A DNA stretch of 64,000 bases, from NCBI GenBank assembly GCA_964188305.1, contig OZ076885.1. The stretch is one strand, 5' to 3'. This document shows, in pieces, positions 225-53,534 of the stretch. The notes below the pieces were generated by a model. That model was not told the origin of the DNA, did not search any database, and saw only the letters and a program-made list of their open reading frames with translations. This DNA is from Podarcis bocagei (taxonomy: Eukaryota). A program made the translations under genes and the position numbers. Within the stretch, counting starts at the first letter, position 1. The number at the start of each line of letters is the position of its first letter.

Positions 225-35355
<35,131 letters not shown>

Positions 35356-44679: not shown

Positions 44680-44882
44680 AAATACATTTATGTTACTGCT
44701 TAATCTTTTATATTATACCCTAAGGAGCCCAGAAGAACACCCATTTCTGCCATTTAGATTCCAGGATATACCTATGTATAATTATAGTAAAGTACTGTTT
44801 CAAGGAAAACCAGTACTTCAATACACAGACTTATTAGCAGGCCTGCCCATTCTCCTTCGCTCCTGAGACTAGCAATCTAGAC

Positions 44883-45613
44883 CAGTGTTTCCCAACCTTT
44901 TTTGGGCAAAGGCACACTTGTTTGAGGAAAAAAATCTCGCGGCACACCATTACAGCCCCGTGACGTCAGCGCGCAGCATCACGCCGGGACGCACGAAAGT
45001 GAAAGTTTTCAATTTTTTTCCCTCCCCCTTGCCGGGGAACCTCCAAGCTTTGGGGGTGGGGGGGGAGGAGGCAGCAAAGCGAGGGACTGAGGGACGGCGG
45101 CAGCTGAGGCGGCGGCGGCTGTTGTGGTGGTGGCGGCGATAGCGGGCGGAGGAGGGGCAGCGGCGGGGCCGAGGTGGCCGGCGGCGGCGGGGGAGGCGGC
45201 GGCGGGTGGAGCAGGAGGGCGGCCGAGGCCGGTGAGGGAGTAGGGTTGCCCGGGGCTTGAGGAGCCGTCGCCGGGAGTTGCTGCTGCTGTTGTTGCTGCT
45301 GCTGCCTGGACATGCCGGCCTCCTCCTCGTCCGCTGTCTCGCGCTCCTCCCTTTTGCACGCGCTGCCCCGCCGCCGCCCCATTGGCTGGGTCCTGTCAGC
45401 TGATCCTGTGTTATTTCCTGTGTGTGTGTGTGTGTGAGGGGAGAATGGAGAGAGAAACCTCGGCACCACCACCGCGGAGCCGCCCCCGGCTCGACGCGGA
45501 TCCTCGCCGCCGCCGCCTCTCACCGCCCGACTCGCCCGCCTCCCTCCCACGGCACACCAGCCAACTTCTCACGGCACACTAGTGTGCCACGGAACACCGG
45601 TTGGGAAACACTG
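44883..45613 (-). mobile_element. Non-autonomous hAT element with GC-rich gene-like cargo, copy 2 (longer, inverted)
   Basis: 15-bp TIR CAGTGTTTCCCAACC; perfect 8-bp TSD ATCTAGAC (44875-44882 and 45614-45621); interior collinear with 3032-3527. Confidence 0.92.
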
Positions 45614-46348
45614 ATCTAGACTAACAGCAATGAAGGCAACAGATACAATTTAGGCCTTTCCTTAAACAGCATTTAGAAGACAGAATGCTCTTTCCCCCAT
45701 ACAAACTACCTTCCAGGAGTGAATTCTAAAGCAAAGCTGAAGGATTCATCAACAACTTAACAGCTAGCCAGACTGTACCTTAACCAGGTTTACAGTCAAA
45801 CTTTAAAATCTGGTTTCAAATGCTAGCTGTAGCAAGCTTTGACACTAATTTGAATAAACTGGGAGAGGGAAATTCAGTCTGTTGGGATGGGGTGCTGACA
45901 GCTGACCTGCAGTTATATCTCTCCACCAGCCTGATTTCCATTCAAAAGAGTTCTATTTAATTTATTCCATTTATATCTTGCCTTTCTTCCCAGCTGGTCT
46001 CTCATTCAGGCATTGACCAGACCCAGACCTATCATAATCCACATACTTTAGATGTCATTAAATTGGTAACATTTCCCTACTTTTAAGAGCTTGCTTACTA
46101 TTTTCTAGAAAAGAAATTTAAATGGCAAAAAAGGTGAGGTAATCTATACTGAAGATGATGGTTTCTTTAAAGCACATATGAGTTATATTACTTTAACAAC
46201 GATTTCCCAAAACAAACAGTTTCTTTGTAATGCAGTAATTTTCCCCAGTCTTGGAATGGATGCTCCAAAGGAGATTTGTAAAATTGTGCGCAAAAAGGAG
46301 AAACTTACTGGCCCAACGTAAGTAGGACAATAACCGTGCCTTGACATT

Positions 46349-48976: not shown

Positions 48977-51900
48977 AGGTCAGAATCAACAACTGACCCA
49001 ATTGATAGCAGAGGCAGGAGGAACCTAAGAAGAGCCCTGCTCCACCAATCAAAGGTCCATCTAGTTCAGTATCTTGTTTCCCAACTTGGCCAATTGGATG
49101 TCTCTGGGAAACCCACAAGCAACCTGCCTTTGGTTTCGCTAGATCAGATTCTGCTGTCACCAGCACATTCTTCCCAGCAAGCCCACATCAAAACCTGGAA
49201 TAGCAATAAATCTTTACCTGGTTTAGGAGGTGGCAGTGGGGTCCGACGACTGGCATGAGTGTAGGGGCAATCTGGCTTGGTGCACTTGGCATCGTATTTA
49301 CAATTTGGATGGATGAACAAGCATTTGTCCGCAAATTTGCAGTTGGGAAAGACTCTGGAATGTGAAAGGGAAAGCTGCTGGGTAAACTTGTTAGAATGCA
49401 TTCACTTTCAAAATAATGTCTATGTTTACACCTCAGTCCTCACCCCTGGCATCAAATACAGTTTTACTTAAATCAAGACACTGGTGCTCTTGGGCTAGAA
49501 TTCTAAAGGAAAACCTCAATTCCGATTTTTCGAAAAACCCTCTGGCTTCAAGTGCTTTCCATGCTCAAATAATAAACGGGCAGAAATCTGGAAGTCAATT
49601 CTAGAGAGTTCAAAGCAACCAAAAAAGTTACATGTGTGCCAAAATCAAGGTCTGCCAAGTTGGTAAGGTCTGGGTTTTTCCAATGAAATCCCCAAACTCT
49701 AAAATGGGCATAAAAAGAGCCAAAATGGATCCCAATGATGTCAGTGGACATACTCAATACTGAACTGAAGGGGGGGGGGGAGGTTAGTTGTCAGACCTCT
49801 AGAGAACTGATCTGATGTTTGTGGATTAAGAACTGGACTGGTGGGGAAAGGGGAATCTCGTCACTGCCACATCATCCTGAGCACTCAGCCCTCTGCAGTG
49901 ACCCCATTTCATTCTATGTTTTGTGGATTTTTTAGATCACAGATGAATTAAATGCTCTGAGAAAGGTCTAAAGAGCTGAATAGTGCTGACATAAATCTGC
50001 TCGAGGGAGCTGCAGAACAATATATGAAGTAGCAATGCATTCTGAAACACTTAAAACAGCTTTTCAGCTCTTCCCCCAAACCTCGCTGTACTATATATAC
50101 CTCACAATATTAATTGTATTCCCTCTTTTCATAAGGATTTGCCTCTATCACAATTCAATATATACTTCTATAGTGTATATTTCTCACAGCTATTTTCTGG
50201 ATGTTGTTAGCCTGCATCCCTCTGGATGTTGTTAGCCAGCATCTCCCATCACCCCTGGCCATGCTGCTTTGAGCTGTAGGGTCCTTCAACTTTAGCCTCG
50301 GTTGGGTACACGAAACCCTGACTACGCTACCCGTTTGGCTACACCTGTTCTACTGTGGTGATGCAAGAAGCCAACCAAATCCACAGCTGTCAGGAAGCAG
50401 AGCTGGAGACCCAAGAGCAGACCCACCTCCCTTCTCTCCCAGAAGCTTTTGTGCAGTGGCCTGCTCAATCAGACCCCATCTAGCCGAGCATCCTGTTTAC
50501 TGCTGTAGTCAGCCAATGGCTTTTGCGAAGCACACAAGCCTGGCAGAAAGGCAATTGCCCTTCCAATATAATCCCTCTACCTAGTCTTCAGAAATGAACC
50601 GACCTGACCCTGGAACTTTGATTAGGCGTTATGACAAATAACCAACGGCAGACCTCTCCTCCTCTTTGCCTCTGTCCAATCCCCTTTTGCCCTTTAAGCT
50701 AGTGGCCATTGCCATAACCCGTGGCACGGAAATTTCATTCCAGTGCAGTGGAGGCTTTTGCTCAGGACTAATACAGAGGAGAAGACAGGGGGAGAAGCTA
50801 ATTTTTGTGAACGCTGTGCCTGAAGACCAGGAGGGCCAACTGCATCAAGAAGCATTTGTACCACTAACTTGCACGGCAATGTGGGGTGATGGAAGGCACA
50901 TTCGTCTCCATTTTTGCAGGCGGGCCAATACTTGCAGCGCTCGGGTACTTTTTCCGCTTTGTGCAGGGCACCAACATCCTCCATCTCCACTGCAGAGAGA
51001 AAGCAAAGAGGCTCCAGTTGATCTCAAGTGGTTTGGCTGTTCAAATTTAAGACCGGTTCCATCACAGGGATTATTTACCCACATCAAAACCATGCAAATT
51101 TGAGACTCTCAAGTGTCAAAATGTGATGGGGCGTGCTATTTATTTAAAATATTCCTGCCCCACCTAGGCCTCCAAGTCAAGAGAAGAAAAATAAACAGAA
51201 TATTTGTTTAAAATAAAAAAACAATAATTATAAGGCACCAGCGATTGAAAAATACAATACACAACCAGCTGCTGTTACACATGTGACATGGGGAAATCGC
51301 TCCTGGCTCATGATTTCATCTCTGGGACAGAAGCATTTCTGTCCTAGGCAACTGTATAGCCTGAGGCTCCTGGCCCAAACAGTAGAGATGATCATAACTG
51401 GCTACCCCCCCAGGATTTAGGAGCCTACTGTTTGCTGCCTCAATCCCAGATGAGCTTTCATTGAGTCAGGAACGCAGGGTTGGCAAAAGTGGTATCCCTT
51501 CAGGTGTTGTTGTGCTCCAACTGTCCTAAGCCTCATCAGGTGCATGGCCAATGGCCAGGGATGATGGCAATATCTGCAGGACCGCAACTCCCCAACCACT
51601 GCCTTAAATGTGGTGCATCCAACCAGGGCCTGTGCTGTTTGCTAATTATGCTTAGACAACGTTGAGGGTGGGGATCAGAGCTGTGTTCTTCCCATTGTGA
51701 GAGGTCTATTAGAAAAGAACCTGCCATGGGAACTTAGCCTGCAGTTCAGTCACTGCATTCCTTCCTGCCTTGTGCTCAGCTCGAGTTGCCCAAAGAAAGC
51801 AATGCAAATAAAGAAGCTTTGCAACGAAGCTAACAAAAGATGCTTATCCACTGGGGATGGACTGTTACCATCGGTGCTCTCCAGCTGTCTGGATATAACG

Positions 51901-53534
51901 TGCATCTGTTGCGCACGAAGGCTTCTTAATCCCTTGTTGGCTGTTGCTTTGGGGGCAACTGGCCTTACTCCTTCCATGAGACTCATTTCCTCCTCCTCTT
52001 GATCAGACAAGTATCCTGGCGGGCTGGGGACTCCGTCCAAGGTGACTATGAACTTGGGACTAGCAGGCTTCTCTGGCTGCACAAGCTGCTCCCTGGGATG
52101 AGAGAGGGGAACCCAGAAGGAACGTCAAAGCTACTGAAACAGAGAGCAGACTAAATGTGTGACAATACAACACCCAATTCATGACAATTTGTGAAAGTTT
52201 TCTGTTGACAAAAGACCAAACTTTGTTGTTGTTTTTAAGGTACATTCTTATCTCTAAACCACTTTCCTTAAACTTCTGATAACTGAGATATGCATTTTTT
52301 CTAAGCTAAAATAGAAAAGATGCTCCCCTCTCAGTTTGTGTAAGGAGAGAACGTAAGATTCCTGATGGATCAGACTAGAGGCCTCTCTAACTGAGCATCA
52401 TCTTTCTCAGTGGCCATCCAGATGCCTCTGGGAGGTCTCCAAGCAGGATATGAGACCCGAAGGATTTCCTGTCCCCAGAGGCAACTGATTGGCTGAGTCT
52501 GTATGAGTCATTGCTCTTCCAATCAGAAGGCCCATCCAGAATTGTGACTCATGCAGGGTCACAGTAAGTAGGCTTCTTGCTACCACAAGGCAGGGTGATG
52601 GTCACCCGTTTAAGATGGTTTTAAGAAGGAATTAGACAAGTTTGTGAAAAATTAAGATTGTCAGTGGCTACTGGTCACAATAGCTGTATTTATGATCAGA
52701 GGCAGCATGCCTCTGGACACCAGTTTCTGAGGAACAAGCAAGAAAGGGCTATTTTCCTACTATCTGATTGCAGCCAATAAGGACATGGCCTGCCCTCAGC
52801 TGCTTTTGTAGGTGGATCCTTTGGGCTCATTCAATCAACTGATTTATTGCAATGTGCTAGCAGTTTGTGAATTATTGGACTAAAGTAGCCCTGTCATTTA
52901 ATGAGCCATTTGAAGGCAGGTAAAAAAAGCCAGGAAGAGGAACTAGGGCAATTCACCATGGCTCTCTTTTTTAGAAAAGGAGTAAACACATCTTCAAAGC
53001 TAAGAGACCTAATTCACACAACCCCTTTGACATTTCCCTATGTATGATGCGACTGAGCACCAAAACACACCACTCATGTAATCAGGTATGCCAGTTGCTG
53101 CAACTAGGTAACTAAGCTTGAGTTTCTTAAGCCTTTTACTGAATTTTTAAGGAACAACTTTTTACCTTGCCTGTATGAGCCGTCCTGAAAGTGCCTGTAA
53201 GGCCTCCGAGGCCCTCTTACCCACTTCCAGATTCTGGGGCACCATTATCTCCTCGGACAGCTTGGGCTTCTTCAAGATAAATGATCTGGTGTCTGTGTGG
53301 ACCATCGATTCCAAGTCATAGTAATCTAAGCCAGAGAAAATGGTAGAAGTGTTCAAATCAGGCTGTCGTAACCCAAGCACGGGGACAAGTGTGAAGCTCT
53401 TTAATGAGGATAAGCAAAGTCACGCAGACTGCCCAGTTGAGCATTAAACTAGCATATTTTCCACTGCAGCAGGAACAGAACTGTACAGGTATCCCCTCAC
53501 TTGCGTGCGACCACATATACACGCGGCACCAGGA

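Follow-up and report, generated by a model that had tools for sequence, protein, structure and literature searches.

A candidate Pack-hAT family in a lizard genome, with an interior resembling the 5' end of a host gene

Does the GC-rich element near the end of this stretch of Podarcis bocagei DNA (contig OZ076885.1 of assembly GCA_964188305.1; all 64,000 nucleotides are referred to here as the window) carry a piece of a host gene that has been multiplied with it, and, if so, which gene was the donor? An earlier note on this DNA proposed a non-autonomous hAT transposon that had captured and amplified the first exon of RANBP9. The explanation that we find best overall, and regard as reasonably probable, is an amplified non-autonomous hAT family that carries the 5' end of a host gene, most likely RANBP9.

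Two insertions of one non-autonomous hAT element

The first copy (copy 1) occupies 731 bp, from 44883 to 45613. The proposal that it is bounded by terminal inverted repeats (TIRs) and a target-site duplication (TSD) held up on inspection, with an exact TIR pair and perfect 8-bp repeats at its two ends. Its features, in window coordinates, are as follows.

44875..44882, no strand: left TSD of copy 1, ATCTAGAC; the identical 8-mer lies at 45614-45621
44883..44897, + strand: TIR (3' end in cargo orientation), CAGTGTTTCCCAACC, 0 mismatches, one half of the inverted-repeat pair
44898..44960, - strand: subterminal region; its GGCACAC motifs at 44911-44917 and 44941-44947 are presumed to bind the transposase
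44961..44968, no strand: putative CRE-like palindrome TGACGTCA holding the stop codon of the open reading frame (ORF), kept in copy 2 (3433-3440)
45030..45153, - strand: module B, low-complexity DNA with high GC content, in both copies and absent from the Logan contig described below
45154..45328, - strand: module A, a 15-nt leader, ATG (45313) and about 53 codons reading MSRQ-Q9-LPATAPQAPGNPTPSPASAALLLH-P9-ATSAPP; RANBP9-like
45329..45374, - strand: GC-rich leader or proximal-promoter-like DNA, common to copy 2 by the alignment of the copies
45375..45459, - strand: 85-bp segment missing from copy 2, with a CCAAT box and a (GT)n run
45460..45544, - strand: GC-rich segment common to copy 2, which lacks 12 bp of it
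45545..45598, - strand: subterminal region with three GGCACAC motifs, including a 16-bp palindrome GGCACACTAGTGTGCC (45573-45588)
45599..45613, - strand: TIR (5' end in cargo orientation), exact reverse complement of CAGTGTTTCCCAACC, 0 mismatches
45614..45621, no strand: right TSD of copy 1, ATCTAGAC, read from the sequence

A second, 496-bp copy (copy 2) had been reported at 3032-3527 with a perfect TSD of its own, and it is found there, flanked on both sides by CTCTAATC as against ATCTAGAC for copy 1.

3024..3535, + strand: copy 2 with its TSDs (element 3032-3527; TSD CTCTAATC at 3024-3031 and 3528-3535)
3032-3046 and 3513-3527: TIRs of copy 2, matching the copy 1 TIR at 15/15 and 14/15 positions, respectively

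The two copies lie in opposite orientations and can be aligned end to end; they differ at 7.2% of 483 aligned positions (K2P 0.076). Relative to copy 1, copy 2 is missing six internal blocks (12+85+107+12+24+8 bp), which show 0-4 nt of terminal microhomology, and contains three small insertions of 4, 8 and 1 bp. The arrangement of the 45545-45598 subterminal region recurs in copy 2 at 3057-3094. Since the copies have every internal junction in common, their interior was acquired once, before the two lineages split, and the different TSDs indicate that the copies inserted independently. The same filler thus occupies two sites with different TSDs and common internal junctions, as in a multicopy element, and the different TSDs, the shared interior junctions and the 7% divergence together sustain the view that the cargo has moved with the element at least twice.

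The assignment to the non-autonomous hAT elements, also made in the earlier note, is well founded in the CAGTG-start TIRs, the 8-bp TSDs and the lack of a transposase. The 15-bp TIRs fit the YARNG consensus of hAT ends, both TSDs are perfect and have the length expected of hAT insertions, and in both copies transposon sequence with TIRs flanks the filler and is bordered by TSDs, which is the Pack-TIR arrangement. Across both strands of the 64 kb there are four TIR matches with at most one mismatch, where about 0.005 would be expected by chance, and the four form two correctly oriented pairs. Subterminal repeats such as GGCACAC are the usual binding sites of hAT transposases; each copy contains five GGCACAC motifs, all some 70 bp or less from an end, and 10 of the 24 sites in the window fall inside the two elements (1.2 kb), with 7.2 expected for the whole window. 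No transposase is present in the 731-bp or the 496-bp element, and a Pfam search with the longest ORF found no domain. An Rfam scan of the whole window returned no match, and derivation of the element from an RNA gene was rejected on that basis. Viral contigs scanned for the TIR together with the subterminal motif gave no match and so no lead to a viral vector.

Judged by TIR and TSD, the closest documented relatives appear to be hAT-HT3_AC of Anolis carolinensis, its non-autonomous derivatives (hAT-HT3N1-3_AC) and hAT-N3_AC. The TIRs of hAT-HT3_AC, an autonomous element of 2754 bp, and of hAT-N3_AC are CAGTGRTTCCCAAA and CAGTGGTTCCCAACCT, respectively (Novick et al. 2011, PMC3014272, Table 1), near-identical to CAGTGTTTCCCAACC here. 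The target consensus of the Anolis hAT-HT and hAT-N families is NTCTAGAN (PMC3014272); over the two sites available here, the copy 1 TSD fits it fully and that of copy 2 at 4 of 6 specified positions. The Anolis hAT-HT3N and hAT-N3 families are also alike in having non-autonomous members of 326-833 bp, which in their case reach hundreds of copies with a few per cent divergence. Unlike the element described here, the hAT-HT3 and hAT-N3 families, which were compared by TIR and TSD only, have no reported gene-derived cargo.

Exon-like ORFs at 249-623 and 34556-34915 (+) match the second beta-propeller of EML proteins (Pfam PF23414; E 1e-12 and 7e-10, both under the curated whole-protein cut-off of the family). 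These ORFs on the + strand place the window in a gene of the EML (echinoderm microtubule-associated protein-like) family and copy 2 in one of its introns, with the cargo in sense orientation; copy 1 lies antisense, 10 kb downstream of the last recognised EML-like exon. A donor-like sequence, CCG/GTAAGC, occurs in copy 2 at 3485-3493, sense to the EML-like gene and past the ATG and stop codon, and is absent from copy 1; as read from the sequence, chimeric transcripts could arise from it.

Several other features of the window were noted. A 210-aa ORF at 9279-9911 (-) looks like the C-terminal tail of a retrotransposon-type ORF and has no Pfam match, and an exon-like 110-aa ORF at 51750-52082 (-), beginning MQPEKPASPKFIVTLDGVPSPPGYLSDQEEEE, lies on the strand opposite the EML-like gene, also with no Pfam match. 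A 16-bp unit, GGTTACATACGCTTCA, is present as 2.4 copies at each of 14100-14138 and 31446-31484; the two sites are identical and are probably two copies of another interspersed repeat. Tandem repeats at 31852-32133 and 5587-5888 comprise one array with a 44-bp unit (5.8 copies, with AGCCGCTAA-type 18-mers) and a 149-bp tandem duplication (2 copies, 92% identical).

A CpG-island-like interior

The description of the interior as CpG-island-like was confirmed by its composition. GC content and the CpG observed/expected ratio are 0.67 and 0.84 over the 731 bp of copy 1 and 0.69 and 0.99 over the 496 bp of copy 2, compared with 0.41 and 0.28 for the whole window, and both copies qualify as CpG islands by the definition of Gardiner-Garden and Frommer (>200 bp, GC >50%, CpG observed/expected >0.6). 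Read in cargo orientation, the order is GC-rich DNA, a (CA)n/CCAAT piece, GC boxes with a short leader, the ATG, polyQ, LPATAPQAPGNPTPSPASAALLLH, polyP and CCG-type low-complexity DNA. The (CA)n tract is the (GT)n run at 45420-45436, and the CCAAT box lies at 45385-45381, 72 nt upstream of the ATG in copy 1; it is absent from copy 2. An IRF/ISRE-like motif, GAAAGTGAAAGT, can be read downstream of the CCG-type low-complexity DNA in copy 1 only. The CCAAT, GC-box, IRF/ISRE-like and CRE-like motifs are candidate sites read from the sequence, and the division between transposon backbone and cargo is tentative.

Both start codons reported earlier are present. From ATG 45313 on the - strand, copy 1 is open for 115 codons to a stop at 44968-44966, through the MSRQ-Q9-LPATAPQAPGNPTPSPASAALLLH-P9-ATSAPP stretch, in which CAG and CAA codons are mixed across the polyQ tract. 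From ATG 3235 on the + strand, copy 2 encodes MSGQ, Q9 and LPATAP and is open for 66 codons to a stop at 3433-3435. The length of these ORFs carries no evidential weight, because at the base composition of the interior a stretch of 95-115 codons stays open with a probability of about 0.08-0.25, and because three or four frames of this DNA contain ORFs of more than 110 aa; ORF length was therefore rejected as evidence of coding. The 107-bp deletion puts copy 2 into another frame across module B. Since the deletions shift the frame, and since the ORF leaves the gene-like part and stops in element DNA, the cargo is not being maintained as protein.

CpG positions differ between the copies at 13.6%, compared with 5.0% elsewhere (Fisher P = 0.004). 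The two copies retain 44 of the 61 aligned CpGs in common; of the 17 that differ, 10 are TpG or CpA. The pattern is compatible with young, normally decaying copies. Germline hypomethylation was considered as a reading of the CpG retention and dropped, since with two young copies age explains it equally well.

Origin of the cargo

The interior is likely the captured 5' end of a host gene. Human RANBP9, which we take to start MSGQ-P6-Q8-L and to contain AAALLLH-P7-ATAAPP, would match the start of the cargo in both order and content, and, provided that it reads so, the match is far beyond chance. Searched as a degenerate DNA pattern, the AA[L/F]3-H-P5 motif is rare, with 13 matches in 241 million metagenome records, none of them gene-related; a true RANBP9 match would accordingly not be a chance one. 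The published description of RanBPM/RANBP9 gives it a proline- and glutamine-rich disordered N-terminus (PMC5493780). On the strength of this resemblance, we are fairly inclined to accept RANBP9 as the parent. The term first exon was an overstatement in the earlier note: the gene-like part shared with an outside contig (45328-45154) consists of a 15-nt leader and about 50 codons, and no exon-1 splice donor was identified in it.

Searches of protein collections returned no RANBP9 sequence and gave little that bears on this parentage. RANBP9 was not among the phmmer matches to the 115-aa ORF in 1.84 billion representative proteins, a result that is uninformative because the query is of low complexity and the vertebrate orthologues fall into one 50% cluster. 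The only match in that search was P0001, a 162-aa ORF on a 1751-bp Logan contig (L001; run ERR14042001). A word-index search with residues 1-55 of P0001 returned only P0001 itself, within an 89-283 aa window that excludes full-length RANBP9. PDB searches with the ORF, a 39-aa core and a 3-row profile did not find RANBP9, and the only weak match was to an alanine-rich run in a trypanosomal DnaJ-like protein; a full-text literature search for the peptide strings found nothing. Given the low complexity, the length windows and the 50% clustering, these blank searches are weak evidence against RANBP9. Two further sets of matches were discarded: ESM Atlas look-alikes, whose scores of at most 0.63 were meaningless, and those found when the peptides were aligned with an unrelated 746-aa filler ORF, for which 5/5 matches were relatives of the antisense ORF of the filler (246-394 aa).

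The Logan contig is the only occurrence of cargo sequence that the searches found outside the window. Its nt 1-163 align with window positions 45328-45154 in 175 columns with 91% identity; a 12-nt indel in the polyP tract is the chief difference from copy 1, and LPATAPQAPGNPTPSPASAALLLH is identical in copy 1 and P0001 (18 residues by BLASTP, the whole stretch by alignment). Past nt 163 the contig continues into unrelated GC-rich DNA of CpG-island-like character and then into AT-rich DNA; its frame, counted from the shared ATG, stays open for 136 codons, as far as a consensus GTGAGT donor (nt 423-428). Neither a TIR nor a GGCACAC motif is present within 1.6 kb downstream, so no hAT end was found there, and no forward frame beyond nt 163 appears to continue in a RANBP9-like manner. 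The point of divergence (after 45154) and the 3' edge of the 107-bp deletion in copy 2 (45156) are no more than 3 nt apart, which suggests that two modules of a mosaic cargo meet here; a fragile (CCG)n site would be another explanation. An exact 21-nt match, CTGCCCCGCCGCCGCCCCATT, between window positions 45363-45383 (+) and nt 146-166 of the contig (E 2e-4) ties the reverse complement of the CCAAT-box region to the point at which the contig exits the cargo; it may be a chance match in CCG-rich DNA or the trace of a template switch.

The contig may represent the parental locus, a rearranged copy, or a mosaic element whose downstream cargo differs; because it begins only 15 nt upstream of the ATG, these three readings stay side by side. 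If it is the parental locus, the parent may not be RANBP9, which none of the forward frames past the shared part resembles. A Pack-hAT whose module A came from another host locus, either that represented by the contig or some other polyQ/polyP gene, would account for a segment that is carried without a hAT end within 1.6 kb downstream and that departs from the element just where module A ends, and none of the searches linked the cargo to RANBP9. We nevertheless consider such a donor unlikely: the order of MSGQ, polyQ-L and AALLLH-polyP-AT-APP is specific, the AALLLH-polyP motif is rare, and a contig starting 15 nt upstream of the ATG is equally well read as a truncated or mosaic copy of the element.

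Less probable again is the reading in which nothing was captured, the GC-rich low complexity being intrinsic to the hAT lineage or produced by slippage or recombination between elements, and the protein start being a chance reading. Much of the interior is indeed CCG/CGG-type low-complexity DNA in which direct and inverted repeats abound, DNA of such composition is expected to contain long ORFs in several frames, and the protein-database searches were blank except for one Logan ORF. Against this, LPATAPQAPGNPTPSPASAALLLH is not of low complexity, is identical in copy 1 and P0001, and occurs in the Logan contig outside any recognisable element, and the promoter-like layout of CCAAT box, GC boxes, a leader of about 70 nt and an ATG is coherent. 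The reverse direction, in which a host first exon was born from the transposon by exaptation, is highly improbable: vertebrates have many first exons and promoters of TE origin, a general point that gives it no direct support, and, should the gene be RANBP9, the P/Q-rich N-terminus described for mammals long predates a family with 7% divergence.

The favoured explanation, an amplified hAT family with a captured gene 5' end, would work as follows. The full form of the family would be about 730 bp long and lack a transposase of its own; a hAT transposase supplied in trans would presumably recognise the 15-bp TIRs and the subterminal GGCACAC motifs, and cut-and-paste insertion into NTCTAGAN-like targets would generate the 8-bp TSDs. 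The interior would be foreign CpG-island-like DNA of at least two modules, of which module A, in this scheme reaching from 45154 to about 45459 on the - strand, would have contributed a core promoter (CCAAT, GC boxes), a short leader, the start codon and the first 50 or so codons. Its donor would most likely be the RANBP9 gene of the lizard. The family would then have amplified after the capture, and its copies would decay as short internal stretches are lost, in some cases at 0-4 nt of terminal microhomology, as in copy 2. As the cargo is not maintained as protein, the host would be affected, if at all, at the level of regulation, by dispersed CpG-rich fragments that resemble promoters, and not through coding.

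Known gene-capturing elements and what this family may add

Pack-hATs are already known as a kind in animals, and multicopy examples are rare. A survey of 100 animal genomes found 370 Pack-TIRs, of which 208 were hATs and only four were multicopy, three from frogs and one from an alligator (Tan et al. 2021, PMC8277862). With none of those four in a lizard, the earlier remark that gene capture followed by amplification is much less documented in vertebrates is a fair one. For anoCar2 the survey lists 0 Pack-TIRs from 77 scanned TEs, 0 of them hATs (PMC8277862), so that squamates are effectively unsurveyed; we found no paper in the literature that describes a squamate Pack-hAT. Multicopy animal Pack-TIRs favour GC-rich cargo (PMC8277862), a trend that the present cargo fits. 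The Pack-TIR definition of Tan et al. calls for a matching parental locus in the same genome, and the element described here is a candidate Pack-hAT by its ends and its copies.

A close parallel is hAT-N8_XT of Xenopus tropicalis, present in three copies that carry 291 bp from the 5' UTR of CAPSL (PMC8277862). Both are non-autonomous hATs with intact ends that bear a short GC-rich piece, in the lizard probably and in the frog certainly from the 5' side of a gene, at several sites with distinct 8-bp TSDs, and in neither is a coding function retained. The frog element differs in its three copies, as compared with two copies in 64 kb of a squamate host here, and the present cargo seems to be a mosaic that takes in promoter, leader and start codon. 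Rice Pack-MULEs and other plant Pack-TYPE elements are likewise TIR elements that capture GC-rich gene fragments and then amplify, with captures that are often 5' ends and often mosaics of several loci (PMC8903248; PMC8277862). They are unlike the present case in belonging to the Mutator superfamily, with a 9-bp TSD and long TIRs, and in numbering thousands of captures in plants, whereas one cargo was examined here. In the fungus Pseudocercospora fijiensis, a hAT captured the host histone H3 gene, and amplification gave hundreds of copies, none of them functional (Dhillon et al. 2019, PMC6710886); there, unlike here, a complete coding sequence sits in a full-length hAT and was inactivated by RIP.

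A broader reading is possible though doubtful: that a lizard hAT lineage repeatedly captures CpG-island promoters and the starts of first exons, in many cases as mosaics, and then multiplies them into tens or hundreds of copies, with the RANBP9-like family as one member and the junction at ~45155 as a module boundary. If so, the lineage would be a vertebrate counterpart of the rice Pack-MULEs, and promoter-competent CpG islands would be scattered through introns, as in the sense-oriented copy in the EML-like gene. If the cargo has no parental gene, the family would be simply another lizard hAT MITE.

Capture of gene fragments by DNA transposons followed by real amplification is routine in plants and barely seen in vertebrates. 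A well-documented, abundant squamate case would lengthen the short list of four, and would be especially useful if the cargo is a promoter with its start codon and if related elements carry the 5' ends of other genes. It would provide a tractable system for the mechanism of capture, through its junctions, microhomology and module boundaries, and for asking whether GC-rich cargo aids the spread of an element and whether new promoters or chimeric transcripts arise from dispersed CpG-island fragments.
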